Origin: Chara braunii
Taxonomy: Eukaryota; Plantae; Charophyceae
NCBI GenBank assembly: GCA_003427395.1
Contig: BFEA01000046.1
Span: 517,279-581,278 of the forward strand
Direction of reading: 5' to 3'
Length of the DNA stretch: 64,000 bases
The position numbers and the translations under genes were made by a program. Below are positions 14,204 to 64,000 of the stretch, in pieces; the first letter of the stretch is position 1; the number at the start of each line of letters is the position of its first letter. The notes beneath the pieces are model-generated. The model saw only the letters and a program-made list of their open reading frames with translations, did not search any database and was not told where the DNA came from.

Positions 14204-15165
14204 AGCAAAGCGACCGGATCGGTCAGGAGGACCTCATCTCCAGTCCCATTTCAATGTTTTCAGCAAACAGCAAAGCGACCGGATCAGTATGAAGGACCTC
14301 ATCTCCAGCCGCATTTCAATGTCTTAGGCAAACAGCAAAGCGACCGGATCAGTCTGAAGGACCTCATCTCCAGCCCCATTCCAATGTCTTACGCACACAG
14401 CAAAGAGCCCGGATCAGTTTGAAGGACCTCATCTCCAGCCTCATTTCAATGTCTTAGACAAACAGCAAAGCGACCAGATCAGTCTGAAGGACCTCATCTC
14501 CAGCCCCATTTCAATGTCTTAGGTAAACAGCAAAGCGACCGGATCAGTCTAAAGGACCTCATCTCCGGCCCCATTTCAATGTCTTAGGCAAACAGCAAAG
14601 CGACCGGATCAGTCTGAAGGACCTCGTCTCCAGCCTCATTTCAATGTCTTAGGCAGACAATAAAGCGATCGGATCAGTCTAAAGGATCTCATCTCCAACC
14701 CCATTTCAATGTCTTAGGCAGACAGCAAAGCGACCGGATCGATCTCAAGGACCTCATGTCCAGCCCCATTTCAATGTCTTAGGTGAGCAGCAAAGCGACC
14801 GGATCAGTCTGAAGGACCTCATTTCCAGCCCCATTTCAATGTCTCAGGCAAGCAGCAAAGCGACCGGATCAGTTTGAAGAACCTCATCTCCAACCCCATT
14901 TCAATGTCTTACGCAAACATCAAAGTGCCTGGATAAGTCTGAAGGACCTCATCTCCAGCCCCATTCCAATGTCTTAGGCAAACAACAAAGCGATCAGATT
15001 AGTCTGGAGGACCTCATTTCCAACCCCAGTTCAATGTCTTAGGCAAACAGCAAGGCGACCGGATCAGTCTGGAGGACCTCATTTCTAGCCCCAGTTCAAT
15101 GTCTTAGGCAAAACAGCAAGGTGACCAGATCTGTTCGGAGGACCTCATTTTCATCCCCAGTTCAA
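14204..15165. repeat. 65-bp tandem array inside the LTR (about 15 units)
   Basis: Unit GCAAACAGCAAAGCGACCGGATCAGTCTGAAGGACCTCATCTCCAGCCCCATTTCAATGTCTTAG. Confidence 0.95.
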
Positions 15166-21235: not shown

Positions 21236-21870
21236 ACACAGGTCTGTATTTTCTACAGTTCATGGGTATACTAACTGGGCTTGCTCAAGTGCTCATCCCA
21301 CAGGACTGTTTTCGAACAGTCTGCAGGGGTACCAACCTGCGCTAGGCCCAGTGGCTGTGATCCCACAGACTTCTTTTCAACAGTTCGTGAGTGTACCACC
21401 TGAACCATGCTTGCAGGTGCTGGTTTCACAGCCCTGTTTTCAACAGGTCACGGGTGTACCAACTGAGTTATGCCTGTAGGTGCTGATTTCACAGCCCTGT
21501 TTTCAACAGTTCACGGGTGTACCAGCTGAGTTATGCCTGCACGTGCTGGTTTCACAGCCCTGTTTTCAACAGTTCACGGGTGTACTAGCTAAGTTACCGT
21601 AGGTACAGATCCCACAGGACTGTTTTTCAACAGTCTGCAGGTGTACCAACTGAGGTAGGTCCCCAACTGTTGTTCCCACAAGCCTATTCACAGCAATTTG
21701 TGGGTGTTCCAACTGGCTAGCGTAGGTGTTCATCCCACAAGACTAACAGTCTGCGGTTGTACCATCGAAGCTTAGCTCATTGGCATTGGTCCCACATGAC
21801 TGTTTTTCAACAGTTTGCGGGTGTACAAGCCGAGCTTGGCCCAATGGCAACGGTCCCGTAGGACTGTTCA
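21236..21870. repeat. About 63-bp degenerate tandem array inside the LTR (copy at about 34173-34815)
   Basis: Recurring CACAG..CTGTTTTCAACAGT...GGTGTACCA with a more variable tail. Confidence 0.9.
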
Positions 21871-28391: not shown

Positions 28392-31300
28392 TGTCGAGCG
28401 CCCGGTCCCCGCTGGGGGAACCTTCCCGGCCGCGTCACGCAGGATTGGCAGAATTCGCATCTTGATTCACAAAAAGGGAAGCAGCGGAGCCGCTCCGGCC
28501 AAGTGTGCCAGCTATACCTCCATCGAGTCCCTACGACAGGACAGGGTCTTGCGAGGTACAACTTACCTCCACCCGCGGGAGCTGTTACCATCCCTTGGGT
28601 GGGCGTATCCTCGCCGAGCTACTGAACCACACGCGAAAGCTTTTACTTGCAATCGCGGAGGTGGCCCATCCGAGGGCGTTTCTCGTATATTGTAGCATAA
28701 GGGGTGCACGTGGTCCACGCCTAGCTCGGACCCGTACGCGAACCGTCACGCGGGGCCGCTGATCTCCCACGTGCGCTTCAGCGACGGTCGACTAGGACAT
28801 CCTAAGTCAACCACACGATACGCGACAAAGCAAACTAACTCAGACAAAAAATAAGCCTAGTCCCTTTTTCATACATCCTGAGCCATAACTCAAAAAAAGC
28901 CTTTGTGTCTTAAGCGAGACCCATACGAAATCGCATAAAAAGAATGCAACCGTCAAAGGAATCATAATGCTCAGTCATGTGTACTCAGTTGATCTGCTAT
29001 CATGGCGACGCTTCATGCGTTATCCACATCCACGCACCCGTACGACACTCAGGTGTCGAAAGCAAAATATCGTGAAGGGGGTTTCCTTCACGATATTGCA
29101 CGGCTGAAGGATAAGTCGTGCGGCCCTTGCGGCACGCCTGTCTTTTAGGCAGTGGGTGACGATAAGCAAGAGGCGTAGACCCAACTCAAGGGGGAAACCC
29201 TTTTGTGTTGGACCAGAGTCTGGGGTGTCGTGGACAAGGACCTCGAATTCCAAGCTCAGGACCAACGTCCGACTAATAATTTAAAAAGCAAAACCCCTTT
29301 GAGATGGGATTCGCTCATCCCTCCCCTGAGGGACGAAAAATAAGAGTGGTCGTGGGTTGGCGAGCAATTCGCCATACCCAAACTAAGTCTCAGTCTGAAC
29401 AAAGGTTGAGCGCTAAACCTTGCACTCGGCTTCTCCTGCCTGCTCGCTAGATGCGTGCGGCAAGAGCAAAATAAGAAAAAGAAAAAGGCGAGTCTCGGGG
29501 GAAATCACGGAGAGTCATTCTAACAGCCATAGTTGAACCTTGTCACTCACACCCTGTACTCATTCATCCATATCACTCTCAAATCCAGAAGTGAGTCCTT
29601 GCTCCCATACATACATGCACACACATGAAACCCAATGAAAATTCACAGCCAATTGCCACAAAACGTGGTCAACTCCTTTGCTCCCAGGTTCATGTCCCAC
29701 ATGCCCCTTTTTGACCCCCACTCGACAAAGGTATGCCCGTCCGATCCATTTCACACAACTTTTGCATGGCCATTCAAGAGTGGTTCAGAGAGTAGAAACT
29801 TTATTTACACAGAAATGCCTTTCGCCTACGGAGTCACATACATCTGGGCGTGGGTATCACGGAGGGTAGGAGTTGAGTTGCAAACCGACCTGCTATCAAT
29901 CTGACCGCAGAAGTTGAAGAATCTCAAGACTTCGAAGAACACTCGCAGGTAGCAATGACCTGCGTCACAAAGATCAAGGCAGGCGTCGCCTGTCGAGTTA
30001 ACGGAAATCAACTCCGTATTGCACTCTAATCTACTTAGCAGTAGCGTCTGATAACGATGTGAAAATCCCAAAAATTTTGGCTGCACTTCCTTTACGGAAG
30101 TATTTACTATACTAAATCTCAAAAGAAAACTTGTCACTCTGAAAATATCTGACAATAAACTAACTCTTTGGTTTTAGTACAAATTTCGGCAACACTTCCT
30201 TCATAAAGGAAGGCTTCCAAAATTCCTACTGACCCCAAAGACTAAACTATATCCTATCCTAGCGGACATCTCTGAAACTTTGACTAACTTTGAGTATTTA
30301 GCAGGAATTTTGACAGTATCTCCCCTAAGAAAAAGAGGCTCCCAGAACTTCTACTGACTCAGAGGCTATTTAGAGTCCTATGAAAAATAATCATACAAGA
30401 AGAGACAATGCGAAAACAAAGAGCAGACATGTACCCGGCCTGTTGCTCAAGCATAAGGCGAGCACTAACGAACTACCCTATGTAATGCAGAATACAAACA
30501 GAGCTTGAGCAAAAAGACAAAGCATTGCCAACAAGCATGTCATGTCCACATCGCATTCAGTCAATTCAAAACAAAGTTTCGTTCATTTAAAGTTTTAATC
30601 TTTCACTTGTTCTGATCACAAAAAAAACATTAGTCCTGTATCTTACTTAGTTGATTAACTTTCCAAGTTGTTCTCAGTCAACCCCATGCAATCGCTAAGA
30701 CACTTAGCCTGGACTATTCTCACAAGGAGAAGAGTCAGACCTTTGTCAACAAGCTAAACTGACTGACTTAGCAAAGCAACCGGATGGGTCAGAAGGACCT
30801 CATCTGCAGCCCCATTTCAATGTCTTAGGCAAACAACAAAGCGACCGGATCAGTCTGAAGGACCTCATCTCCAACCTCATTTGAATCTCTTAGGCAAACA
30901 TCAAAGCGACCGGATTAGTCTGAAGGACCTCATCTCCAGCCCCATTTCAATGTCTTACGCAAACAGCAAAGCGACCGGATCAGTCTGAACGACTCATCTC
31001 CAGCCCCATTTCAATNACTCATCTCCAGCCCCATTTCAATGTCTTAGGCAAACAACAAAGTGACCGGATCAGTGTGAAGGACCTCATCTCCAGCCCCATT
31101 TCAATGTCTTAGGCAGACAGCAAACCGACCGGATCAGTTTGAAGGACCTCAGCAAAGCGACCGGATCAGTCTGAAGGACCTCATCTCCAGCCCCATTTCA
31201 ACGTCTTAGGCAGACAACAAAGCGACCGGATTAGTCTGAAGGACCTTATCTCCAACCCCATTTCAATGTCTTAGGCAAACAGCAAATCGACCGGATCAGT

Positions 31301-34300
31301 CTCGAGGACTTTATTTCCAGCCCAGTTCAATGTCTTGGCAAACAGAAAGGCGACCGGATCAGTATGGGGACCTCATTTCCAGCCCAAGTTCAATGTCGTT
31401 GACAAAACAGCAAGGCGACCGGATCAGTCTGGAGGACCTCATTTCCAGCCTAGTTCAAATCATCGCATACAAGCATCATGATTTTTACCACAGACAGATG
31501 ACTTAAACATGCATAGTAGATTCCCTTTCTGATTAAGTTAAAGTCCTGAAAAACAGAATAAACATATACACAAGTCAAAGTCAAACAGACCAAACACCAG
31601 GTTTGTATAGATAAGGGGTTTATTGGGATTCTAATGGTATAGTGCCGGCCTACCTCTGAGTTCCCTGCCTCTAGAGTCCTGCGTGGGTTCCGGCAGAGCT
31701 CCAGCAATCGGTGGGTCAACCTCCCACAAAGGCCTTGCTGCGGTCCTATGGGTTGCAATCCCGCCTTCCGCCTTCCTCTACAAACACAGAGTAGACTCAG
31801 AGGAAGAAGGAAAGAAGAAGAAGTAGTCAGACGCTCGAGATACGAGAAGGGGCCAACTCAACTCCCACGAGAGGGCCTTGGTGCCTTAAGATCCTGAGAG
31901 CCCCGCAATGGCGTCCAAAACGCAGCGTCCACAGTCAGATTCGTGGTTAGAACGAAGCGAAGAACCTGTCTTTGAAAAAACTGAAGTTGCGGCAGCTTCC
32001 TGATTAGTGTGTTTGACACACCGCCCACCAGGTAAGTCTCCAAGCTTTCTCGTCATGCCACTCCCTGCACTCTAATGAGCAATGCACTGTGCAACAGGTA
32101 ATTGTCCAGTCCGCCGCCGACCTGCTGCAACTTCCCTCCGACTATATGAATAACGCACAGTCCGACAGGTATGTCTCCCGTCCGGTGCTGGCCTGCTGCC
32201 CCTCCGAGTGTGTGAATAACGCAAAGTCTGACAGATAAGTCTCCTGTTCGCCGCTGGCCTGTTGCAGCTTCCCTCCGACTGTGTGGATAACGCAAAGTCC
32301 GACAGCAGCGACAGGTAAGTCTCCTGTCCGCCGCTGACCTGCTGCAGCTTCCCTCCGACTGTGTGAATAACGCACAATCCCTCCTTATCAAGACTGCAAT
32401 ACCCGATGTAGCTCGTAGTCAAACCCTCGACACTCCAGTCAGATGCAGGTACCTACAGTCATATCAGAAAGGTCCTCCGGTCGACAACGCTAGTCTCCAA
32501 CCTGTTATGACTCGTCAAAAAGTGGCAGCAGCTACGTCGTTGTGTCAGAAAACGCAGCCCGTCGCCGCCGAGGAAAAAACACAGTCCGTTATTGCTGAGA
32601 AAAAACACACAGCCAGTTGCCACTTCTCAAACCTCAGCGTCATTACTGGTTTCCACCTCAACAGTAAAAATATGAAGCTTGCAATTGTTGAGCATGGAAG
32701 ACAACAACAATGAGCCGCAATGTTCAACAATACTGTGTTGTAGAACAACGACTCTTCGAAGGTTACACAATTGATGGTCGTTGATAGACGGTGCACCCGT
32801 AGGTTGATACATCCCTTTATTTCTCTCTCACCTTCCTTCCCCTTTCTGTCGTTCCTACCCTTCGCCATTCAGCCCAATGCATTCGGCCAGGTCCCTGGCC
32901 AAGTACGTCCAACCTTGCACCGAAGGCAGACTGCACCGTGACGAATGACGTGCACAGCAACGATCTTGACTGCAGCAGCAAGCCTGTCTACCTACTCACA
33001 AAAGGTGTGGAACGAATCTTCAGCTAGAATATAGAAGGATACACGGTTGCCTGGCTTGAGCGCCACAAACCACGGCCAGGTGAATTTGATACTGATCCCA
33101 ATGGCTCTTCAGCAAAGCGCTGCAAGGTCAATGCTCGCCCCACTTCATCTTCTTTTATTTCTTCACCTGCCTTCTCGTATCTGTGCCTGATCCCGGCCAG
33201 ATACATACGTAATTTCCCTGCTTCTTTATTCACCTCTGCGAGCAGCTCACAACTCCGCACCGAAAGCACCAAACTCGATTTTGACTTTGCCACTGTGCTC
33301 ACAATGCCCGAAAACCCCAGGTATGCCTTCCCCTTCGTCCACCAAATGTGCAAATGTGAATGTATCTCTCGCTAGAACACGGAAAGATACATTGCCTATC
33401 CCACAGCTCGGCTCCCATCTCCTGTACCACCAAAATTACTAACCTAGCACCAAAACCAACCCTGCCATTGTGTTCATCATGCCTCAAAACCTCCTTTTCA
33501 ACTCCTCACTTGCCCGATTTCATCAAGAAACGGTGAAGATACACCAATTTCCCGTTTCGTTTTTCTCCCTCCTTCGTCTCCTTCGCGCACGCTATTTGTA
33601 CTGCACCTCCCAATACACCCAACCATTCGCTAATTTGATTCCACCACCGAACTCGCCCGACCTCATAACCCCTATGTAGCACTTTGGTTCGCCCGATTCC
33701 GTCGAGAATCGGGTGAGATAATCGATCTTTGCTCTACCATAGCCGTTTCCTTCTTCGCCTCCGTCACTTCCCTTCACTCATCGTCCTTGTTTCCCCCGAC
33801 GTCCTTTCTTCCTCGTTCATTATTGCTTAGTGCCCGCCGCCCGCGTTCTCACTTAGCGCTGCTTAGTACAATGTTAGCCCTGTAGGATCAGACCCAAGCG
33901 CTTCAGCTACCGTGAGGGAAAACTTTGGTGGCAGCTCGCCCCTATACCCAAGTCTGTCGTACGGTTTGCACTTCAGCTTGCTGCCAGCCCTTTCCACAGT
34001 GCCATTCTGGCCGTGCCCCTCCTAGGTTCAGCCCAACATCCCCCGTTTTTTTTTTTCTTTTTTCTTTTTTCTTTTTCTTCTTAGATATCATCCCTAAGCT
34101 GACCGGCCCCGGGCAATTCAGAAATAGTTGGTCCTACAACTTTACTCATCACAATCCATCATCAGGATTCGAACACAGGTCTGTATTTTCTACAGTTCAT
34201 GGGTATACTAACTGGGCTTGCTCAAGTGCTCATCCCACAGGACTGTTTTCGAACAGTCTGCAGGGGTACCAACCTGCGCTAGGCCCAGTGGCTGTGATCC

Positions 34301-36267
34301 CACAGACTTCTTTTCAACAGTTCGTGAGTGTACCACCTGAACCATGCTTGCAGGTGCTGGTTTCACAGCCCTGTTTTCAACAGGTCANGGGTGTACCAAC
34401 TGAGTTATGCCTGTAGGTGCTGATTTCACAGCCCTGTTTTCAACAGTTCACGGGTGTACCAGCTGAGTTATGCGTGCAGGTGCTGGTTTCACAGCCCTGT
34501 TTTCAAAAGTTCACGGGTGTACCAGCTGAGTTACTGCAGGTACAGATCCCACAGGACTGTTTTTCAACAGTCTGCAGGTGTACGAACTGAGGTAGGTCCG
34601 CAACTGCTGTTCCCACAAGCCTATTCACAGCAGTTTGCGGGTGTTCCAACTGGCTAGCGTAGGTGTTCATCCCACAAGACTGTTTTTCAACAGTCTGCGG
34701 GTGTACCAACTAAGCTTAGCTCATTGGCATTGGTCCCACATGACTGTTTTTCAACAGTTTGCGGGTGTACCAGCCGAGCTTGGCCCAATGGCAACGGTCC
34801 CGTAGGACTGTTCACCCTCAAACCTCTTACAGCAACACATGCTTGGCAGGTGGTGCACCCGCAGGTGCTGGTCCGGCCACTCAGGTTCCTTCCTCGTTGC
34901 GGGCTACACACCCACTACTCACATGCACGTTGAATTCCTCGGACCATGATTTTAAGATGGGGAAGATGGAGGAATTTTATCAGCATCTCGACCACGGACG
35001 AAGTCGAACGGACCTTCTGAAAGAGGCGTTTGCTCAAGGTTCTCGACTGCCGTGACGGCCACTCGTGGGGAGGTGTTTCAATCGCTCCCTACTATAATGC
35101 CGGTCACAACAGCCTATGCTGGCATGCACCTCACATACCGTCAAGGAGGACGGTGATGCAGTCGCCTTCTATCCCCGTTGAGTGGGGATAGACGACTTTT
35201 CTCCTCCCGCTTCGTCGCTCAACAATCTTCAAACATTCTTTAACTCTCTTTTGAAGTTCTTTTCATCCGCCCTCGCGGTATTTCTTCGTCATCGTTCCCA
35301 GAGCTAGTTCCCGGCCTGGTCAACAGACGGAAAATTGGGAAAAAATAAAAATAAAAATAAATCAACAAAATAAAAATAGTGGAATTGAAGAGGACGAGGA
35401 CCTGTCGATGCCCTCTTGGTCTTGCCAGTCGAACCCAAGCTTGGGCCCGTCTAACAAAACCAAGGGGGATAGTCCCTTAAGACCCTCGACCCCTCAGTCC
35501 CTGTTGGTCGCGTTCCCTTGCTCCATCGCCACTTGCTGACCTCGAACCCCAAACCTGTCGCTTGAAAGTCCAGAATCGTAACCATTAGAACTAGGCCGAA
35601 GGCTGAGCCAGGTAGGTGTGAACCTGCGTATGAATAGTCGTGGGACCGTGATTGGTCATACCCGTACAAACCAGGCCTCCACCTTGGCCTACCGGCCAAC
35701 CTCCTGGCCGTCAGAAGACGCCGAGACGTCGCCCACGCCTAGGATCGTAACTGCCTGGTATCCTGGTCGTCGGGCGCTCGACATATGTTGTCAAACTTTC
35801 GACTTTCCCCCATACTAGGTTTGCCAACGCCTCGCCTTTCCGTGTGTCACCAAACACACTCTTCCTGCGTGTGCGCAAGGTAAAGCTTTTATCCTCTTCG
35901 CGCCGTATCCCCCCAGAGACCGAACTAGTTGCGAAGTAAATGTAGTCTTTATAAAACAAAAGAAAAATATAATCAACAATAAAAGTTACAGAAGGGAGAG
36001 TAATCGGGCCCTACGGCTTTGGCGCCATTTCGCCAGCTTAGGATTGCCGATGACTAACGGCTATCTCACCGTGCAACGCAATAATGAGTGCCCCACACAC
36101 CGTGCAACGCAATAATGAGGGCCCTACGGCTTTGGCGCCATTTCGCCAGCCTAGGTGAGCGACCTAACAGGGTTCGCCCCATCAACGCATTACGTTAATC
36201 AAGGACGCCCCTAGTGCGACCTTTAAAAAGGACGGCAAATACCCTTGTAAGGGTGTTTGCCACGATA
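28392..36267 (-). repeat. 5' LTR, 7,876 bp
   Basis: Direct repeat of 11797-23245, followed by the PBS; contains the same three tandem arrays. Confidence 0.85.
30770..31455. repeat. 65-bp tandem array, 5' LTR copy
   Basis: Same unit as 14204-15165 with fewer units. An N at 31016 makes the copy number uncertain. Confidence 0.9.
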
Positions 36268-38215: not shown

Positions 38216-38920
38216 GTCATGGGAGCTCAGCAACAAGGGAACCAGAACGATTAAGGAAAAGAAAAAAAAAACTTAAAAAAAACAAGGGGACCAGAACGCC
38301 ATCTGGATGTGAATGGTTCTGTTCCTTAGGCTGAGGATATGGCCTCTAGTTGCAATAAGCTCGGCCCTAGGATTGCTCCATTTCACTTTCTTACCGTCCA
38401 CGGTTAAATGCTGATCTGACAGTCTACTCCAAGTAGCATGAGAGGGACATTATGAAGGGAATGATGCAAAAGCCTCCTGGCAGTTAATCCTCCTATTAGG
38501 GGCAATCAATGCTGTAGAAGGGGTCCTTCAACCTCAATGGAAGGAATACTTTTTTGGTTACCTGCAAGTGAGTGTACTGAACGACTTCCGGTGAAAAAGT
38601 AACCGGACTGATGCTCCCCAGAATGGAATGCATCCAGGACCCCAAGGCCCTGTCCAGAAAAGAAAGGAAGACAAGAAAACTGAAGTGAATATAATGCCTA
38701 TAATGTGCTTCCTTCTGCAGCTGTGTTTTTGTCCACCAACATCCAGCAATCTAGATATTAAGTTGTGCTGTCATAACACTGCTGTTGTTGTATGGATGTC
38801 TTGAATAGTTCACCTGTCGTGTCTTTGCAGTTGTCTTCCTCGTGCTATCCATATTCTTTCCTCTCACTGTGGTGCTACATTTTGCTAATTTAGTATGTGA
38901 CTTGGAAACTTCTTCTGCAG

Positions 38921-39532
38921 GCTTTCTGTTCGCAAGGAGGAGACATTTTGAATGTGGGCTTTGGGATGGGAATTGTGGATGAGGCCATACAACGGCGGTC
39001 ACCTAAGTCACATATCATTGTGGAAGCACATCCGATGGTGCATGAGAAAATGCTGAAAGCTGGTTGGTCAACCCGGCCTGGAGTCGAAATTCTGTTTGGC
39101 CGGTGGCAGGAGGTACTCACCCCTCTCGCGGGTCAGAAGCAGTTTGACGGAATCTTCTTTGACACGTATGGTGAGGACTACGAAGACATGCGCGAGTTCC
39201 ATAATCTGGTCCTAAAGCTTTTGAAACCAAATGGAATCTATTCCTTCTTCAATGGGCTTGCAGCAGATAATGCTTTCTTTCATGCAGTATGCTGCCATGT
39301 TGTTGAACTTGAGATGGCCCGTATGGGGCTTTCGGTCCAGTTCATCCCACTACCAGTGGGGAGCATCATAGGATCCATATTGCCGTCTGCAGGTGAAACA
39401 AATGGTGCACAGCAAAAGGAGGACGTTTGGAAAGATGTGGCGAGGCGATATTGGCAACTTGACACATACTATCTCCCTGTCTGTCAATTTGAACAGCAGG
39501 AGGAGGAGGAGGAGGAGGAGGAGGAGGCATAG
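38921..39532 (+). CDS. RMT2: Terminal exon of an RMT2-type (type IV, GAMT-like) protein arginine N-methyltransferase
   Basis: SAM motif ILNVGFGMGIVD, IIVEAHP, GRWQ, FDGIFFDTY, LLKPNGIYSFFNG, YWQLDTYYLP. Preceded by a branch-like GCTAAT and an in-frame acceptor TTCTTCTGCAG; open through to TAG. Upstream exon(s) not found. Confidence 0.9.
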   Translation, partial: AFCSQGGDILNVGFGMGIVDEAIQRRSPKSHIIVEAHPMVHEKMLKAGWSTRPGVEILFGRWQEVLTPLAGQKQFDGIFFDTYGEDYEDMREFHNLVLKLLKPNGIYSFFNGLAADNAFFHAVCCHVVELEMARMGLSVQFIPLPVGSIIGSILPSAGETNGAQQKEDVWKDVARRYWQLDTYYLPVCQFEQQEEEEEEEEEA

Positions 39533-39752
39533 GAGAAAACTGAGGAACACGTTGGGCGAAGTGCCATGCACAGGGATACAAAAACATGTGTGCTGGAGAA
39601 GAATTAGGGAAGAAAAAAGAGGAGCACAACTTCTACCGTAGAATCCATCAACTAGTGGTGTTGAATTAGCTGTAATGGTGTTGAATTTAGTTCCGACAAG
39701 GGAAAATGACGTCAGGAAAGGTTGAGGAAAGGTTCAGTAAGGTTCGGTGCAA

Positions 39753-39855
39753 GGAGAAGGTTTGGAAAGATGTGGTGCAGCGGAATTGGCAGCTGGACAG
39801 ATACTATCTCCCTGTCTGTCAATTTGAACAGCAGGAAGAACTGGAGAAGGCCTAG
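39753..39855 (+). pseudogene. Diverged duplicate of the last ~33 codons of the RMT2-like exon
   Basis: EKVWKDVVQRNWQLDRYYLPVCQFEQQEELEKA* versus EDVWKDVARRYWQLDTYYLPVCQFEQQEEE...A*. Confidence 0.85.
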
Positions 39856-40734
39856 GAGAACGTACTGGTGTTGAATTTAGTTGCGACAAGGGTGATGCAA
39901 CACGCAGACAAAAACAGACACAAGAGCGCAGGAGAAGCCTAAGGGAAGAAGAACGATGGGCAGAACTGCAGAAGTGAAAAATGGGACTTGTGCTTTCTGA
40001 AGCTATGAAGGCGTAGATCCAAAAAGGGAGAGAGCCGGAGGGGCCGGAGGGGCCGGAGGGGGGTTGCCGATTGCAATCAAGTAATGGTTTTGAATTAGCT
40101 GCAATGGTGTTGAATCTAGCTGCTGCAAGGAAAAATGAAATCAGGAGAGGTTCAGTAAGGTTAGGTAGTAGGCCCAGGATCACCTTCCAATTGATGAGGA
40201 GGTATGGCAGAGGTTGCAGCACCCTCAAGAATAGAACAGGTGCCTGGATTTCTCCTGCGGGGGGCAGCATGCTGAGAGGTCTTGTACATTTCCTGCATGT
40301 CATTCTTTCTGACAGCACTTGCATGGAAGTTGTTTGACTCAAAGTTGGAGTGACTTTCTTCCATGTCTAACTTATGGCATTACGTCTTGCTGCTACATCA
40401 TTTGTGTTGTGATTTTTTAACTTGGGAACACAAGTCCCTTTTATCTGTTCGGGCTGCACAACCTGCATTACCGGACTGCGGATTTTACAACAGTAAGGAT
40501 GATTGGTTCCATTGCTATGTCCTCAAAGACTGAAGATTGGTCCAGCGAAGGAGGTTTTCCTTCCTCCTCTCACTGTGGGTGGGTGATGGTCTGGTTTGAT
40601 TTTCGCCACAGGTACCTTGAGGGCAGTGGTTGGTGCCCACCTCAGGGTATCCGTTGTCAGGCAGTCGTTGATGCTAAAACACAACCGGGGTTAAGGTGGA
40701 TTATCACTTAGTGTAATCAGTTAGGAGATTCTGC

Positions 40735-40790
40735 AGACTGTTGAGGGTTCAGCCTCCTGATGGGTTGGTGAAACTCCAACGAAACAGTTT
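40735..40790 (+). ncRNA. Hammerhead ribozyme fold, type III topology, A9G variant
   Basis: AGACUGU-U | GAGG-guucag-CCUC | CUGAUGG | GUUGG-ugaaacu-CCAAC | GAA-ACAGUUU. Stems III (7 bp), I (4 bp) and II (5 bp) all pair. Confidence 0.75.
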
Positions 40791-41239
40791 ATAACAGGCC
40801 CTCGTTTGTTGTCCTCTTCTCCCTCTCTGCCTACGGTTTACCGGGCAGTTCTGTTTGACGATACAGTGACTTTGATAGCACCCTGCTAAGGCTTTCTCCG
40901 GTCAGGTTGAGCGTCTGTGGTCGGGGCCGTCACTACGCGGCCGTGCTGTGCGTCTAGTGTCAACGGCGTGTCTGGAATGTATTTTCTGGTTGTGATAGAC
41001 CTTTCTTTTTTTTGTCCGTGTTTTGCTGGCTTGTGATGAGTTGTGAACCAACAGTCTGTAAGAGTTTTCCATCTGGTGTGGGTGAGTGATAGTCTGCTTG
41101 GATTTTCGTCACAGGTACCTCGAGGGCCATGGTTGGTGCCCACCTCAGGGTATCAGTTGTCGGGCAGTCATTGATGCTTAACCACAACCGGGGTTAAGGT
41201 GGATTATCACTTACAGTGTAATCAGTTAGGGGATTCTGC

Positions 41240-41294
41240 AGATTGTTGAGGGTTCATTGTCCTGATGAGACAGTGAAATCCTACGAAACAGTTT
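41240..41294 (+). ncRNA. Second, degenerate hammerhead copy
   Basis: Canonical CUGAUGA...GAAAC core and stem III retained (AGAUUGU/ACAGUUU); stems I and II mismatched. Confidence 0.55.
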
Positions 41295-41327
41295 GTCACA
41301 GCCCCTCATTTGTTGTTCTTTTCTCCC

Positions 41328-41696
41328 TGATGCATGCCCAGTTGGGCACTGTATATGGAGCCAAGGATCCGCAAACAGACGAAAATGTAGCGCAGTGGAA
41401 GACTCAACGATATGACCTGACCTGTCAGACTGACACAACATCCCATCATACGCCACACATGTGAGAGAGGGAACAGGGACCGCATACACAGAAGAAAGGT
41501 CCCTCCTTGCACGCGCACATGGGGGAAATACCACGGATGAGAGATGGGGGGAGAGGCAAGACGAAGACGGAGGCGAGGGAGAAGACCAAGATCGTGATAC
41601 CGAAATCCAAAAATAGTGCCTTGCCGAATGACCAATCAATGTCTGCCACAAAAATGTCGGATTGGATCCTGGGCTATATGCCCGATGCAACCTCTG

Positions 41697-41746
<50 letters not shown>

Positions 41747-42466
41747 GAAGAAGAAGAAGAATAAGAAAAAGGAGGAGGAAGAAGTAGGAAGAAGAAGAAG
41801 AAGATGTCGTCCTCCTCGCTGTCTCACCTGCAGGTAACTGTCGCCCTGTACTGACTGCCGTGTCGTCGTCGTCATGTGCAGGTCGGCGCGCGGAGTCTCA
41901 GCTATGGCGCCAGGTAAGTCCGCCACTGCAGGTATGGCCTCCGCCCCTCTGCCTACCTGCCCCTCTACCTCTACCTCCGAGCGCAGCACTAAAGTGGTGC
42001 AGCGCTGGTCCAGCAGCGTGTCGCCCAAGAAGTGAGCTACTCGAACTGTGTGTCTGCTCAGCCGAGGCCCAGCTATATGCAGCGCTGGGCCGGCTGGGTG
42101 GGCTGCAGTGTTGGCCTGAAAACGGCCCGCACGGTCGGGGCCCCTACCGGGCATCCAGACCATGCTGCTGATGCAGCAGGGCGCCAAAACACGCCTGGCC
42201 TCCATCGGCCCTGCCTCCTGGTGTACCCAGCCCAAGGCATCGCCTTGGGGACTGCAAGTCCGAAACGACGTCTGAACAGACAAAAATAGGACAGCAATAA
42301 ACAAACAAATAAATAAACAAATAAATGATGTCGTAATGCCGTACCTGCAGCCCAAGGGCCGCCGTGGGCCTCCAGGGCGCGTGTCTGATGGGCACACGGC
42401 CTGGGGGCCCCTCAGCAACCGTCGGCCCCCTGTAATGGGGCCCGTGTGTAGGCGCAGCATGTAACA
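41328..42466 (-). repeat. 3' LTR of gypsy element A
   Basis: Minus strand: G-rich PPT at 42467-42479, then TGTTACA...; probable end ...GCATGCATCA at 41328. Contains a (CT)n microsatellite. Confidence 0.7.
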
Positions 42467-42479
42467 CCCCCCCCTCCTT

Positions 42480-45400
42480 ATGAAGTCAAGCCGGGTCGAG
42501 GGCAAAGCTGACGATCTGATGGTGGAACCTGGACGCGAGTATGGTGTGGAGCCGAAGGTACCGGCTTGCCTTGCAACTTGCGCTCGTAGCGTGTGAGAAT
42601 GTCGGGGGCTGTTGCCTGAAGTTCCGCACGGGTCAACCAACAGTCAGCGTTATGGCTGCAGTAGGAGAAATGTAGTAAGTACTCTGTCGGCCTGTTGCCG
42701 TAGCGTCGCTTGGAGATGATGTCGCCAGCCTCTTAAAAATTGTCCATAGAGGGTGGGTCTTGCAATCGTTGCCCGGGAAAGTCGTCGTGTTCCGCTGAAG
42801 TGAACGGAGCTAACTTGGAACAGTGAAAGACCGGGTGGATGGGCAAGTGGGCGGGCACTTGAATGACAAATGAAGGTCCTTCAGGTGCATCCCCAGTGGG
42901 TGCCACGATGGGACAGGGCCCCATCCATTTCAGAAGGAGCTTGCGAGAGATATCTTGTTCGAGGCTGAACTCCGCGGCGGAGACCCATACAAGGTCGATG
43001 GTGCGAAATGGACAAGGAAGACGCCGACGAGTGGCCTGTTGGCTCATGCGTTACTGCGTCTTGGACATCCGGTGGCGTACCTTGACGAGTCGGTCTTGCA
43101 TCCGACGAAAGAAGAGAAGATGGTCGTCGTTCTCGGCCGCCCATGGGATAATCGTGTCCAACTGCAAAGTGACCAGCGAGCCATGCTCGAACTCAAAGGG
43201 TGACCTCCCGATCGCCGGATAAATGGACGAGTTGTATGCCAACTCGACATCTGGCAGCTGCTCAACCCAATCATTTTGGTCGGGATGGATGAGAGTGTGA
43301 AGGAGAACCTATGCGGTCTGATGCGCCCTCTCCGTTTGGCCGTCGGTTTGGGGTGGCGAGCCGGACTCGACTTGAGAGATGAGCCTCATCGTTTGATGAG
43401 CGCCAACCAAAAATCGGACATAAACTCGATGTCGTGGTCACAAACAATCTCGTTGGGGTAACCCTTGGTTCGAATCCAACTGGCGTAAAGAACCTCGACC
43501 AACTCCGGTGCATTGGCGTGATAGCAGCAAGGCAGAAACATGGCGAACTTGGTGAGTCGATCGACCACCGTGAGAATTCCATCCACACTGGTCTTGTGCT
43601 TGGGGAACGGCCCGGTGATGTCCATGGCAATCGCTTCCCTTTGTCGCAAGGGGATCGGTAATGATCGCAACTCACCGTACGAATGATGATTGTGGGATTT
43701 GCAACGTCGGCAAACCTCGCATAACTCGCAATAGCGTGTGACGTCGTCGAGAAGGTCGGACCACCAAAAGCGCTCATGAAGTCGGTCAATCGTTTGATTG
43801 ACTCCAAAATGTCTGGTGGTGGGAGCATTGTGCAACTCGCCAAGAAGCCGCACATGCAAGTCGCGAAACTTGGGGTCGGCTTGGTAGCCGCGGATGAAGC
43901 TGTCCTGCAAGTCGTCATCAATCTCGAAAGTCGAGTAGACTGCGGTACAATGGTCCAGACGCCGTAAAAGAGCATTTGCAAAACGGTTTGATTTTCCCAG
44001 AATGTGGTCGGGGAAAAAGTCAAATTGGTCGATGAAAGTCATCCAACGAGCGATGGTGCTATTGACCGAGTCTTGGGTCTTGTAGAAAACCAATGGATTG
44101 TTATCCGTTACCCATCAGAATTGATTTCAACCAAGAAGAAACTGCTGCCACCGCTTAAGCGCTTGTACGAAGGCTACCAACTCCTTTCGTGCGTCGTCGA
44201 TCGAGTGCGCGACGGACACTTCCTTGCTAAAAATACTTGACGGGGTGCCAATCCACGCCATTGTGTTGCTCGAGGACGGTACCAATGCCATAGCCGGGCG
44301 CATCGGTAGTGATGTGCGTCAGCAAAAGCGGGTTGTAGATGCGCAAGACCTTCGCGGATAGCAAAGCGGCTTTGAGGGCCAAAAATGAACCCCGCGCATC
44401 GTTACTGAAGTCGAACGGCCGATGCTCGCATTGAAGCTTGGTCAAGTTGGACACGATCTTCGAATAGTTTTTGATAAAGCGTTGATAGTAGCCGGCAAGG
44501 CCAAGAAATGCACGAACATCCGTAACATTCCGCGGCTCCGACCACTCTTGGACGACTTGAATCTTGTCCGATAACGGACTAATGCCCTCCGGTGTGATGA
44601 AATGGCCCAAGTACTCCAACTCTTGTCGGACAAATTCACACTTGTCACGGTTGGCTTTGTACTTGGCGCGACGGAGCGTCTCCAACACGCATCGAAGGTG
44701 CTCAAGATGGTCCTCCAAGGTCCGACTATAGACGAGAATGCCGTCTAAGTAGACCAGCACAAACTGGTCCAACATCGTGCAAAACTCGTTGGTCATCGCT
44801 GCTTGAAAGGTCGTCGGGGCATTGGTGAGGCCAAAAGGTATGGCCACCCACTCAAAATATTTGTACCGCGTTTTGAGCGCGGGTTTGTAGCGATAGTGCG
44901 GGCGTATCGAAATCTGATGATAGCGCGACTTCAAATCCAACTTTGAGAAGAACTTTGCGCCACCCAACCGCTCAAGAAGATCGTCGATATGAGGAAGAGG
45001 CCCCACACCCTTGATGGTTTGCGCGCTGAGCTTGCGCTAGTCGATGCACAATCGTAGATCCTTGTTCTTCTTCCATGCGCACCATACGGTGAGCTACTAG
45101 GGCGGATCCAACCCTTCTCCAACAAATCATCGAGTTGCGCGTGGAGAACCTCGAGCTCCTCCTCGCTCATGCGATAGATGCAACCTTTCGGCGACACGGC
45201 ACCGGCCTTAAGAATGATCTCGTGGGAGATCGGCCGATCCAGCACCACACCAGTAGGAGACTCGAAGATGTCGGCGAACTCGTCAAGCAACCGCACCATA
45301 TGGAGGTATGGAGACAAATCTGCGGGTGAAGCGTCTGGTACCACAACGATTCAAAGGAAACATATGCCGATCTCATCGGTCTACTCGTAAGCACAAGTGG

Positions 45401-47886
45401 CCCTAAAAGACTTGGCCGTAACAACTTGGTACCAGATCAAAGGGTGCGGAAGAGGAAGAGTAGACGACACCTCGGCGCCAAAGGCGCCGCAAACGGTAAG
45501 TGTGCGCCAATGGAAGTTGACCGTGTGATCCGCACTTGCAATCCAAATCTTCCCCAAAATGATGTCGAAGTCCGTGTCCAAGACGTCGAACATCACCGGT
45601 TCGAATGCATGAGGTGTGAAATAAACCGGTACTGCCTCGATGTAGCGGTCAATGAGTTGTTGCGTCCGACCGTTCACCAACTTGACCGCTGTAGGATTTG
45701 CCTTCCTTCGAACTTGTGCGCCAAGGCCGAGCCTTTGAATAAAGGACTAGCTCTTAAAATTGCGAGTCACGCCGGTATCCAGCAAAGCATTGCAGGATAC
45801 TTGCCCAACTTTGATGCGGACGTAAAGGAGCGGTGCGTTGTTGGCGTCGTACCGCTGCGTGCGAAACTCGCTGGCCACCTTGGTGACATACACAAGGATG
45901 TCCCCCACCGCAGCTTCGTCATCCGTTGGCGAAGTTGGTGGTGCATAGAAGGATAAGTATGTGTGGAGATGAGCGCATAGTGTTGTGCATTGTGGTCCCA
46001 ACAAGCGGCCTGTGGTAGGGAGAAGAAGCCATGTGAAGTCCTTGGACGTTAGCGGGTCCAAGACCTCTATGTTGAACTCGCGCGCCGAATCCGTGAAAAA
46101 ACACTTGAAGACGATAAACCGTCGCCGCTTCCGGACGAAGAAGTAACCACGCACACATCTTGTCCTTGAGCATGAGTGCCCAGCGAAGGAACGAGACGGG
46201 CAGCATAGTCCTCATAAGAATAGAGAATGGGAGGACCTTCGACTTCCTTGTGTGCTTCGGAACTAAGGGAGGTCGCCCGCACAACAACCAGTTTCGAAGG
46301 CGTCGAGAGTGCCATCGCATCACTCTCGGCGGTGCTCACTTTCCCAACTGGGTTTTCCTCTTGGCCTTGGTGGAACATGCAACTATCTCGTGGAGGTCAC
46401 TGTTGCAACGCAAACAATATCAGAATCTCGTGTATATCTTGTATACGCTTTTCGAGAGACCGTAGTGGTTCCAAGGTGCAAAAGCAGCTGCGCCGGGCCC
46501 GGGGCTTGAAGAGGTGTTGGTCTTTGATCTGTCGCATCCCCGGCCTTTGGCTGGGCGGCCACCATCTCGGGTGGCTGCGAATCTGTCTCCCTCAGCAGCA
46601 GAAGCAGCCTCTCTTGAAGGGTTGGTTGGCGTTGCTGCCGCGACCACTGCCACTTTCGGCCGATGCTGATCTCTGCTCGGGCCCTTAGAAGGCAAACAGC
46701 GAAGATTTATGGCTTCTATGTTCGTCACAATGATCTGCGCGGCCTTGTCGAAGAGCTCCGCACTTGTGGTGAGAGTCTCCGTGACTTGTGTCAAAGCATT
46801 TGACAATGTCGGACATGACCTCGTGATGAAGTAGTGTTTGATGCCTTTGAAGACCATCGGCAACTCCGGCGTGGATGCCAAGCATTGGTATGCGGCTATC
46901 CAATATCCGCTTGGCAAAGTGTTCTGATGGAACTTCTGCAATTTGTCCATTGCTTGAAGTTCGGGTGGCTCCACTTGGAACCGCTTGTGCCATGCTGCCT
47001 TCAGATCAGCCCACCTGATCGATCTTACCGTGACCCCGTGCGTGGACAGCATATTGTGCAGCCAAGCTTGGCATGCCCCCGCCGATCGGGAATATAAATA
47101 TGCGTGCTGGCTGGTATCACAGGTCTCGTGGATCTTCAACTTGAGTTCAAACTGGCGACGCCAAGGAATTGGTTCCGTCTTCGTTACGTCACAGAAGATC
47201 GGCTGGCCATCGAACTTCGGGATGCTCTCGTGTGGTCACGAGGTAGGACCGGCAGCTGCGGCGCAAATCTCCTGCTCAAGTTGTTGAGTTGGTGCTTGCT
47301 GTTGTTGCACACCGGTCTTGAGAGTCCCGATGTCGATCTCCAAAACGTCGAGCCGATCGGCGTAGTTGGAGGAGCCGGCGCTTGAAGCGGCGATGGGTCG
47401 TTGTTCCAGCAGCTGTACGCGGCTGGTCAACTGTGCGGACGGCTTCTTGTGGCCGTCGAGGACCTCGTCGAGGCAGTGGATATCCTCCTGCTGTGCAATG
47501 CAAGTAGCCAGGAGGTCCGTAAGACGGGAGAGCAACAGCGAGATCTTGAGTCCGCTGTTGCTGTCTTCGCCGGTTTCTGCCTCCTTCCGCCATTCCACAG
47601 CCAGCGTGAGTAGTGCTCTCTCCTCCTTGAATACCTTCTCGTGCCGTTGTCTGTGTTCCTCATCAGCAGTGTTTGCTGCTGCTCCGTCGTGCTGTTGGCG
47701 CTGTTCCTCTGCAAGCGGACGTTGATTCTCTGCTTCCTCCTCCTTTTTCTTCTGTGTGGCTGTTGCTGCGTCTGCCCTTTGCTTGGCTTCGGCCATGATA
47801 TTCAGCATCCGTACCGTGTAGGCCTCGACTGTTTCCCCTGCCATCTGCTCCATGGCACTTGTTAGTGAACATGTGCTCACAGGCAT
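42480..47886 (-). pseudogene. Degenerate Ty3/gypsy (chromovirus-like) gag-pol, element A
   Basis: gag ...WADLKAAWHKRF; protease LLDTG...FDIILG; RT LPHIDDLLERL...KLDLKSRYHQ...PFGLTNAPTTFQ...VYLDG (catalytic D lost); RNase H TTDAPGYGIG; integrase H..C.VC, IAMDITGP, KWMGP, HPVFH; probable chromodomain remnant at about 42500-42730. Confidence 0.93.
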
Positions 47887-62099: not shown

Positions 62100-64000
62100 T
62101 TGCGATTCATCCTAGGATGCTCCGCTGCCCTCCCATTGTGTTTCGGCCTGTTCATTCTCCAATTTTACTCTTTTTTGGTAGTAGTTTGAGTTGCGATCCA
62201 CCCCTGAATGTTCCGCTGAGCTTTCCTGTAGATATTGACTCTTCAAGTGCTTGTTTTTTTCTCATTTCGCACTAGGTAGTGTAGCGATTCATCCCTGCAT
62301 GTTCCGCTGAACTTTCTTGTTGATATTGGCTATTCAAGTGTTTGTTTTTCTCTCATTTGACACTAGGCAGTATAGCAATTCACCCCTGAATGTTCCGCTG
62401 AACTTTCCTGTTGATATTGGTTGTTTAAGTGTTTGTTTTTCTCTCATTTAACACTAGGTAGTGTAGCGATTCACCCCTGATTGTTCCGCTGAACTTTCCT
62501 GTTGATATTGGTTGTTCAGGTGTTTATCGTTCTCTCATTTGACACTAGGTAGTATAACAATTCACCCCTGAATCTTCCGTTGAACTTTCCTGTTGATATT
62601 GGTTGTTCAAGTGTTTGTCTTTCTTTCATTTGACACTAGGTAGTATAGCGATTCACCCCTGAATGTTCCGCTGAATTTTCCTGTTGACATTGGTTGTTCA
62701 AGTGCTTGTCTTTCTCTCATTTGGCACTAGGTAGTATAGCGATTCACCCATGAATATTCCGCTGAACTTTCTTGTTGATATTGGTTTTTCAAGTGTTTGT
62801 CTTTCTCTCATTTGACACTAGGTAGTATAGCGATTCACCCCTGAATGTTCCGCTGAACTTCACTGTTGATATTGGTTGTTCAAGTGCTTGACTTTCTCTC
62901 ATTGGGAACTAGGTAATGTAGCGATTCACCCCTGAATGTTTCATTGAACTTTCCTGTTGATATTGGCTGTTCAAGTGCTTGTCTCTCTCTCATTTGACAC
63001 TTGGTAGTGTAGCGATTCACCCCTGTATATTCCGCTGAACTTTCCTGTTGATATTGGTTGTTAAAGTGTTTGTCTTTCTCTCATTTGACACTAGGTAGTA
63101 TAGCGATTCACCCCTGAATGTTCCGCTGAACTTTTCTGCTGATATTGGCTGTTCAAGTGCTTGTTTTTCTCTCATTAGGCACTAGGTAGTGTTGCGGTTC
63201 ACCCCTGAATGTTCTGCTGAACTTTCCTGTTGATATTGGCTGTTCAAGTGTTTGTCTTTGTCTCATTTGACACTAGGCAGTGTAGCGATTCATCCGTGAG
63301 TGTTGTGATGTTCTTCCTGGGTGATTTGGGATGTTCACAGTTGTGTTTTCACTCATGCAGTAGGAAGTAGTGCTCCGATCCACCCATGAATGTTCCGTTG
63401 TTCTTCCTTGGGGAATTGGGTTGTTCATACTTATGTTTTCACTCATGCAGTAGGTAGTAGTGGTCCGATTCACCCATGAATGTTCCGCTGTTCTTCCTTN
63501 ACTTGTGTTCTTCACTCATGCAGTAGGTAGTAGTGGTCCGATTCACCCATGAATGTTCCGCTGTTCGTCCTTGGGGAATTGGGTTGTTCATACTTGTGTT
63601 TTCACTCGTGCAGTAGGTAGTAGTGGTCCGATTCACCGATGAATGTTCCGCTGTTCTTCCTTGGGGAATTAGGCTGTTTATACTTGTGTTCTTCACTCAT
63701 GCAGTAGGTAGTAGTGGTCCGATTCACCCATGAATGTTCCCCTGTTCTTCCTTGGTGATTCGGGTTGTTCACACTTGTGTTTTTCACTCATGCAGTAGGT
63801 AGTAGTGGTCCGATTCACCCATGAATGTTCCGCTGTGCTTCCTTGGTGATTCGGGGTGTTCACACTTGTGTTCTTCACTCATGCAGTAGGTAGTAGTGCT
63901 TCGACTCATCCCCGAGTGTTGTGGTGTTCTTCCTTGGTGATTTGGACTATTCACACTTGTGTTTTCACTCATGCAGTAGTGTAGTTGTGTTCCGGTTCTC
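62100..64000. repeat. About 91-bp satellite/tandem array with two subtypes (switch near 63300), running off the window
   Basis: Shared core GTAG...CGATTCACCC(C/A)TGAATGTTCCGCTG; a period of 91 was measured between 62285 and 62376. Confidence 0.95.

Follow-up and report, generated by a model that had tools for sequence, protein, structure and literature searches.

A 64-kb window of the genome of the streptophyte alga Chara braunii (the whole stretch of DNA analysed here, 64,000 nucleotides of contig BFEA01000046.1, within which all positions are numbered unless another sequence is named) carries at 40574-41328 a non-coding element composed of ~1.6 head-to-tail units with a period of 504 bp, in which two degenerate type III hammerhead ribozymes occupy homologous positions. 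Self-comparison of the window aligned 40574-40824 with 41077-41328 as direct repeats with a period of 503-505 bp, 88% identical over 250 aligned bases (17 transitions, 12 transversions and 3 gap columns; Kimura two-parameter distance 0.127; BLAST E-value 2.7e-73 in the 64-kb window). A first-pass annotation, made from the letters of this DNA, had reported such a pair of ~250-bp direct repeats ~503 bp apart, and the pair stands; BLAST found no third copy within the 64-kb window. The same annotation took the pair for terminal repeats around an internal region, which is better described as a 5′-truncated copy joined head-to-tail to a longer one. Copy A (40574-40863, plus strand, as are all features of the element) comprises a hairpin module, a hammerhead and a complete 3′ tail, and is delimited by the repeat comparison and by a single-copy contig that stops at 40579. 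Copy B (40864-41328), delimited by the repeat comparison and by reads, follows directly upon the 3′ end of A, reaches 213 nt further in the 5′ direction and is devoid of its own last 39 nt; the corresponding 39-nt terminal tail, present after A and missing after B by the same two kinds of evidence, lies at 40825-40863. The supposed internal region is thus the tail of A followed by the 5′ extension of B (40864-41076), which is non-coding, high-copy (depth 1.4-3.2x10^5) and without a long open reading frame (ORF), as is the element throughout this locus. No spacer separates A from B, and their junction at 40863/40864 coincides exactly with the canonical 3′ end of the family to which both belong. 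The locus is a dead partial tandem, an ordinary decayed member of that family.

Covariance-model searches locate a type III hammerhead in each of the two copies. The Rfam model for this class, RF00008, has a gathering score of 48.5 bits, and at gathering thresholds Rfam returned no match in the whole 64-kb window. A sensitive scan covering 40400-41500 (1.1 kb) returned two RF00008 matches below that score, one in copy A at 40735-40790 (36.1 bits, E 7.6e-6, model positions 1-54 of 54) and one in copy B at 41240-41294 (19.0 bits, E 0.53, full length), exactly where the first-pass annotation had placed its two ribozymes. In the first hammerhead, helix III (7 bp), helix I (4 bp) and helix II (5 bp) are all paired and a GUU cleavage triplet is present, but the core reads CUGAUGG, with G40763 at core position 9 in place of A, and so departs from the invariant CUGANGA. 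Core position 9 is invariant in hammerheads, and a G at this position is expected to leave the first copy strongly impaired. The second hammerhead retains a canonical CUGAUGA/GAAAC core together with helix III, and its helices I and II are disrupted. The model alignment thereby agrees with the earlier descriptions of both copies, the first with three stems, GUU and CUGAUGG, the second with a canonical core and damaged stems I and II. Judged from these changes, both hammerheads at the locus are predicted to be inactive. The predicted self-cleavage site, deduced from the model alignment and from read joints, falls after U40742 (40742-40743) and is also the 5′ end of the family's commonest copies. 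A lone 36-bit match is not significant across a genome of this size, and the case for hammerheads is carried by the occurrence of two matches at homologous positions of the repeats, combined with the family-level read evidence described below.

A type I fold had been offered in the first-pass annotation as an alternative, and it finds no footing. When the 5′ strand of helix III was removed, the best match from the hammerhead clan was still type III and no type I model matched; on inspection, moreover, the proposed type I helix I (GAGGG/CCCUC) would not adjoin the core. The strong hairpins reported upstream of the ribozymes fared unevenly. The 12-bp hairpin of the upstream module (40611-40651) folds as described, at -22.7 kcal/mol (z -2.2), and its equivalent in copy B (around 41114-41154) reaches -18.8 (z -1.7), but in the stretch with the smaller hairpins (40655-40742) folding does not surpass that of shuffled sequence (z -0.1). 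For the 505-nt RNA that would extend from one cleavage site to the other, compact folding of viroid type was also considered and rejected: this RNA is not unusually stable, its z of -1.54 being unexceptional and its folding no better than that of 7 of 100 shuffles.

The wider family becomes visible in public Chara braunii reads, of which one DNA run, two RNA-type contig sets and one raw oligo-dT RNA run were compared with 39500-42500 at 85% likeness. In the DNA run, the repeat sets in at ~40575-40580; summed depth rises from ~10 in the flank to 6.3-8.9x10^5 over 40712-40913, which implies a very large family, and stands at 1.4-3.2x10^5 over the more 5′ parts at 40914-41216. The most abundant form is a 121-nt unit, 40743-40863, ending in ...GACGATA, which corresponds to the 3′ product of the predicted cleavage; one contig spans exactly these positions, 40743 being the first base past the predicted cut. 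Behind 40863 the sequence is (TA)n in at least 300 DNA contigs and at least 711 raw RNA reads. Joints lead from 40863 over TA-rich spacers to 40743, 40744 or 40747, the 40743 joint (spacer TATATAATA) being present in DNA and RNA runs alike. Further copies start at 40771, 40794 and 40799 after AT-rich DNA, as expected from 5′ truncation with microhomology, and the family tail is also found joined straight to a truncated next copy (40863 to 41279).

The same reads bear on the structure of related copies. Because copy-B-like reads run from 41328 on into the 40825-40863 tail (joint from 41328 to 40819/40825), copy B is best regarded as cut short at its 3′ end. Upstream of 41061, at least 99 DNA contigs continue contiguously with sequence like 41031-41060, so the 5′ extension of B belongs to the element. 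In the ribozyme itself, a read consensus of the relatives is CTGATGAG-TCGG-TGAAAC, a canonical core, and with the letters that predominate in the family, T at 41270 and G at 41272, the 5′ strand of helix II is restored. In a further subfamily helix II has another, self-complementary sequence, and the two versions constitute covariation between subfamilies. These findings bear out the proposal of a mobile non-coding family with a type III hammerhead, of which the locus is a decayed representative and in which relatives carry the canonical core. The element is transcribed, and in the stranded run sense exceeds antisense by ~3:1. The RNA runs contain 20 to 30 times more sequence from downstream of the cut site than from the upstream hairpin module, against a ratio of only ~2-3 in DNA (40611-41317); this RNA excess could reflect cleavage and loss of the 5′ product, or merely where the short copies lie.

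Searches elsewhere recovered few further copies. An exact-pattern scan of a metagenome collection found one contig (L004, BFBZ01009962.1), which carries at 329-416 a 5′-truncated copy, 93% identical to 40778-40863, with the tail followed by (TA)n, and at 331-274 an inverted 5′-truncated copy that lies head-to-head with the first. Inverted copies can likewise be produced by twin priming of long interspersed nuclear elements. The same contig bears, at 1-110, 600-1030 and 1440-1858, (GA)n, long (GAT)n tracts and a proline-rich repeat of Ser-Pro-Pro type that is coding in appearance. No hammerhead was found in seven NCBI Chara loci around gypsy reverse transcriptase genes (~150 kb, much of it N). 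The sole relative in these seven loci, on a Chara scaffold (L003) at 15004-15132, is a 69% relative of the hairpin module without a hammerhead, and L003 displays no significant similarity to the 5′ extension of B, the ribozyme or the tail. Around 300 bp upstream of this relative, at 14480-14687 of the scaffold, lies a near-perfect 200-nt hairpin that matches several plant microRNA precursor models below threshold (MIR1858, 122.6 bits against 137) and is probably an inverted-repeat transposon. Copies sought by way of spurious ORF translations of the element yielded no candidates.

Taken together, these features make it probable that the locus is a dead ~1.6-unit insertion of an extremely abundant, non-coding Chara braunii retroelement that bears a type III hammerhead ~120 nt from its 3′ end and moves by target-primed reverse transcription with a Penelope-like partner. 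A fixed 3′ terminus by (TA)n combined with 5′ truncation points to target-primed reverse transcription rather than to mobilisation of the long terminal repeat (LTR) type, and such a terminus, together with insertion into a microsatellite, truncation at the 5′ end, partial tandems and neighbouring truncated copies in inverted orientation, is the insertion signature described for Penelope-like elements (PMC8557442). The mention of Penelope pseudo-LTRs as carriers of hammerheads, made in second place by the first-pass annotation, fits the partial tandem of A and B with its junction at the canonical 3′ end. A tRNA-like head such as might mark a short interspersed nuclear element was not detected by ARAGORN in 39500-42500.

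A plausible sequence of events can be outlined. Transcription would produce the element RNA, in many cases as read-through from a neighbour's transcription or from copies in tandem, and the hammerhead would cut it after the GUU triplet; we infer that such cleavage takes place in vivo. Tail-bearing RNAs would then be copied into (TA)n targets by target-primed reverse transcription. On the cleaved 3′ product, reverse transcription would run off at the cut site and so give rise to the dominant 121-nt copies, and uncleaved or tandem RNAs would give longer, variably 5′-truncated copies and head-to-tail partial tandems like that of A and B. The tandems might originate through template switching between linear RNAs or through copying of a multimeric or circular template by a rolling-circle mode, two routes that yield the same DNA. 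Reverse transcriptase and endonuclease would be supplied by the hammerhead-bearing Penelope-like elements of Chara braunii, which are the most likely source of the enzymes.

Several observations weigh against this reconstruction. Neither the window nor ~150 kb of other Chara DNA contains a Penelope-like ORF or a GIY-YIG motif, and a Pfam search of the window ORFs of at least 150 aa found Ty3/gypsy domains only, with no reverse transcriptase of Penelope type. The locus itself lies outside (TA)n, its left flank is unique DNA and copy B has no tail; the insertion history of the locus is only partly readable. Most of the family evidence comes from one read comparison, at the 85% likeness given above and from the best-supported rows, and the depths quoted are summed word depths of contigs, a rough measure and not true copy numbers. 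Finally, the starts of raw reads do not pile up at the cut site.

A different route of propagation would make the family a true non-LTR retrozyme, in which a unit of ~504 nt is excised from tandem transcripts by two hammerheads, circularised and reverse transcribed by a rolling-circle mechanism, the 40863/40864 junction then being internal to the circular template. This model is established in animal retrozymes (PMC7229834, PMC7761336). Rolling-circle copying directly yields partial tandems like that of A and B, which indeed meet head-to-tail without a spacer, and no class of loose ends 'before 40864' appears among the best-supported DNA rows, in which classes down to 30 contigs are listed. 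The RNA excess downstream of the cut site, far above the DNA ratio, also fits excision. Most copies, however, carry (TA)n and not the 40864 sequence after 40863, and the folding of the 505-nt RNA (z as given above) is unlike that of the highly self-paired retrozyme circles. The junction of such a circle would be identical to the genomic sequence at either hammerhead, so that neither the oligo-dT reads nor the contigs bear on its existence. Weighing both sides, we regard this route as unlikely and favour target-primed insertion with a Penelope-like partner.

It is very unlikely, by comparison, that the locus arose by local tandem duplication of one insertion together with its downstream flank, unrelated to movement of the element. 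Two copies that differ by 12.7% and a simple 504-bp period would suit such an event. Against it, the inter-repeat sequence is itself high-copy and in no fewer than 99 DNA contigs directly adjoins the hairpin module, the junction is the canonical 3′ end of the family, and similar joints from a tail to a next copy recur elsewhere in the genome.

Still more improbable is the model favoured in the first-pass annotation, that of a plant-type LTR retrozyme whose 250-bp repeats would be LTRs with hammerheads and whose mobilisation would proceed through circular RNA by means of Ty3/gypsy machinery. A type III hammerhead does lie in each direct repeat at homologous positions, both of them degenerate, and a Ty3/gypsy remnant is located 2-6 kb away on the minus strand. 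What such an element should carry, however, is missing. The tRNA-Met primer-binding site (TGGTATCAGAGC) has no plus-strand match within 3 mismatches, and a single 3-mismatch match on the minus strand is at chance level; no plus-strand purine run of 9 or more that could serve as a polypurine tract occurs in 40500-41400; and no 4-bp target-site duplication is present, the flanks reading TCAC and GATG. These plus-strand searches confirm the annotation's own remark that it saw no tRNA-Met primer-binding site or clear polypurine tract. Family copies, moreover, are 5′-truncated, share a fixed 3′ terminus in (TA)n and in many cases begin at the cut site, and the family boundary is at 40863 and not at the repeat boundary of 40824. 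The postulated Ty3/gypsy mobilisation is accordingly abandoned in favour of target-primed reverse transcription.

On its left, the element adjoins a conserved host gene. Protein searches identified the plus-strand ORF at 38897-39532, whose stop codon ends at 39532, as the last coding exon of this gene, encoding an RMT2-type arginine methyltransferase domain; it is 58% identical over 96% of its length to a protein of Klebsormidium nitens (E 4.8e-72) and also matches many plant PRMT2/RMT2 proteins, with Pfam PF27704 on the matches. No Chara braunii protein figures among the 120 matches listed for this single-exon C-terminal domain, so the public proteome may lack an annotation of the gene or carry it in split form. 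The single-copy sequence that follows (39538-40573, plus strand) has a DNA depth of ~10, with contigs of the public DNA run matching it with 0-2 differences. It is transcribed and runs into the element: RNA-type contigs cover 39538-39830 and 39801-40635 with 0 mismatches. Both of these contig sets must derive from RNA, since other repeats that in DNA stand 3000-fold over the flank are at or below flank level in one set and within ~10-fold of it in the other. Raw stranded reads on the flank fall on one strand only, with the first mate on the minus strand, which in stranded libraries usually denotes plus-strand RNA. The flank is probably the 3′ untranslated region (UTR) or a read-through product of the methyltransferase gene, and the element, in sense orientation, lies where the gene's 3′ UTR ends or shortly beyond it. 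Internal direct repeats of 190-430 bp occupy 39647-40166 of the same 3′ region. That the hammerheads have been domesticated to process the 3′ end of the methyltransferase mRNA is scarcely credible. Their sense orientation, ~1 kb beyond the stop codon, and the RNA contigs that connect the flank with the element would suit such a role, but both carry disabling changes, raw oligo-dT coverage of the flank fades ahead of the element (from ~12 to 0.3 by 40409-40509), and as a repeat the sequence is ordinary, one of a huge family.

On its right, copy B abuts unrelated high-copy repeats (41329-42500, no strand assigned) that lie outside the element and have no similarity to it; they are present in different variants at depths of 4x10^3-3x10^4, rising to as much as 8.7x10^4 in the last bin (42429-42500). 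The 39-nt tail missing from copy B was not found elsewhere in the window. The end of B at 41328 could result from a later insertion or deletion, or could represent the one-sided 'tail' typical of Penelope-like insertions. The high-copy repeat immediately after copy B has an end that reads TGATGCATGCCCAGTTGGGCA, with the palindrome TGCCCA..TGGGCA, and copy B may have been cut off here by a transposon of which this end is the terminus.

The remainder of the window is rich in other repeats. The Ty3/gypsy remnant (43386-47139, minus strand) consists of a weak gag match (46420-47139), a reverse transcriptase/RNase H ORF (44227-45006) and an integrase zinc-binding domain (43386-44093). Its reverse transcriptase/RNase H ORF is 74-84% identical to dozens of Chara braunii proteins and at most 47% identical to those of other taxa; the remnant has no detectable LTR pair and no tie to the hammerhead element. 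Three pairs of duplicated blocks with 89-97% identity (11797-14561/28392-31151, 14853-16367/31150-32656 and 19509-23156/32446-36101) carry 65-bp and 63-bp tandem arrays (14204-15165, 30770-31450, 21374-21654 and 34311-34533), and a 91-bp array of at least 20 units extends from 62193 to 63998, the end of the window. Strand asymmetry is strong and organised in long blocks, the skew between G and C being ~+0.2 up to 11.8 kb, ~-0.2 over 12-36 kb and ~+0.2 over 36-62 kb.

The locus itself matters little; the family to which it belongs matters more. This family joins the type III topology typical of plants with the mode of movement of Penelope-like elements and animal non-LTR retrozymes, namely target-primed insertion, microsatellite targets and partial tandems, and does so in a streptophyte alga near the origin of land plants. 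Reviews have proposed that plant and animal retrozymes both descend from Penelope-like elements (PMC11722881), and the Chara family is the kind of intermediate that such a proposal predicts. In the literature searched, only Craig et al. (2021) pair Chara braunii with hammerheads, and they do so for autonomous elements; that literature contains no description of the non-coding Chara family, its abundance or its cut-site 5′ ends. The 121-nt cut-site copies would provide a countable sign that a genomic hammerhead cleaves in vivo and thereby shapes the material available to reverse transcription, and they are relevant to the unsettled role of the hammerhead in Penelope-like elements (PMC8557442). 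Should the main outcome of cleavage be 121-nt copies that are dead on arrival, the ribozyme may act as a cost, or as a parasite, and not as a help.

It is tempting to go further and to speculate that the Chara family is a working type III non-LTR retrozyme, the first outside animals, which produces circular RNAs of ~500 nt and rides on Penelope-like elements. We consider this possible, if doubtful. If true, animal retrozymes of type I, with their Penelope association, would be connected to the type III retrozymes of LTR type and the viroid-like RNAs of flowering plants, and the DNA copies with a start at the cut site, in their tens of thousands, would stand as a genomic record of ribozyme cleavage in vivo.

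Comparison with known systems sets the family between three groups of hammerhead-bearing elements. With the LTR retrozymes of plants it shares a type III topology, a ribozyme in each direct repeat, a non-coding interior and a host in the green lineage, but the LTRs of ~350 bp, the primer-binding site for tRNA-Met, the polypurine tract, the duplication of 4 bp at the target and the mobilisation by Ty3/gypsy that characterise those elements (Cervera et al. 2016, PMC4918200) are all absent from the Chara locus. With the non-LTR retrozymes of metazoans it shares head-to-tail non-coding units that each carry a hammerhead and are without LTR, primer-binding site or polypurine tract (PMC7229834). These metazoan elements are thought to be non-autonomous derivatives of Penelope-like pseudo-LTRs and attain up to 10^4-10^5 copies (PMC7229834; 10.64898/2026.07.22.740005), the derivation being the subject of a 2026 preprint (Li et al., 10.64898/2026.07.22.740005). 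They have type I hammerheads and units of ~150-450 bp in long arrays, and their abundant circular RNA has been demonstrated (PMC7229834), whereas the Chara family has a type III hammerhead, a ~504-bp unit and mostly 121-nt cut-site monomers in a streptophyte alga.

The third group is found in Chara braunii itself: Craig et al. (2021, PMC8557442) describe Penelope-like families of this alga, Chlamys-2_cBra and the PLE-X type, with a 'canonical 3′-HHR', and report that they are often 5′-truncated, form partial tandems and target microsatellites. The targets reported are (CA)n and (C)n for Chlamys and (TA)n for Naiads, those of the Chara families and their hammerhead topology not being stated (PMC8557442). 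The copies described here differ from these elements in that they are short and non-coding, with no ORF for a reverse transcriptase or endonuclease. The likeness to the published description extends to the organism, to a hammerhead near the 3′ end, to 5′ truncation, to partial tandems that form pseudo-LTRs, to adjacent inverted 5′-truncated copies, to insertion in microsatellites by the family at large, to a very high copy number and to a one-sided tail of 30-40 bp (PMC8557442).

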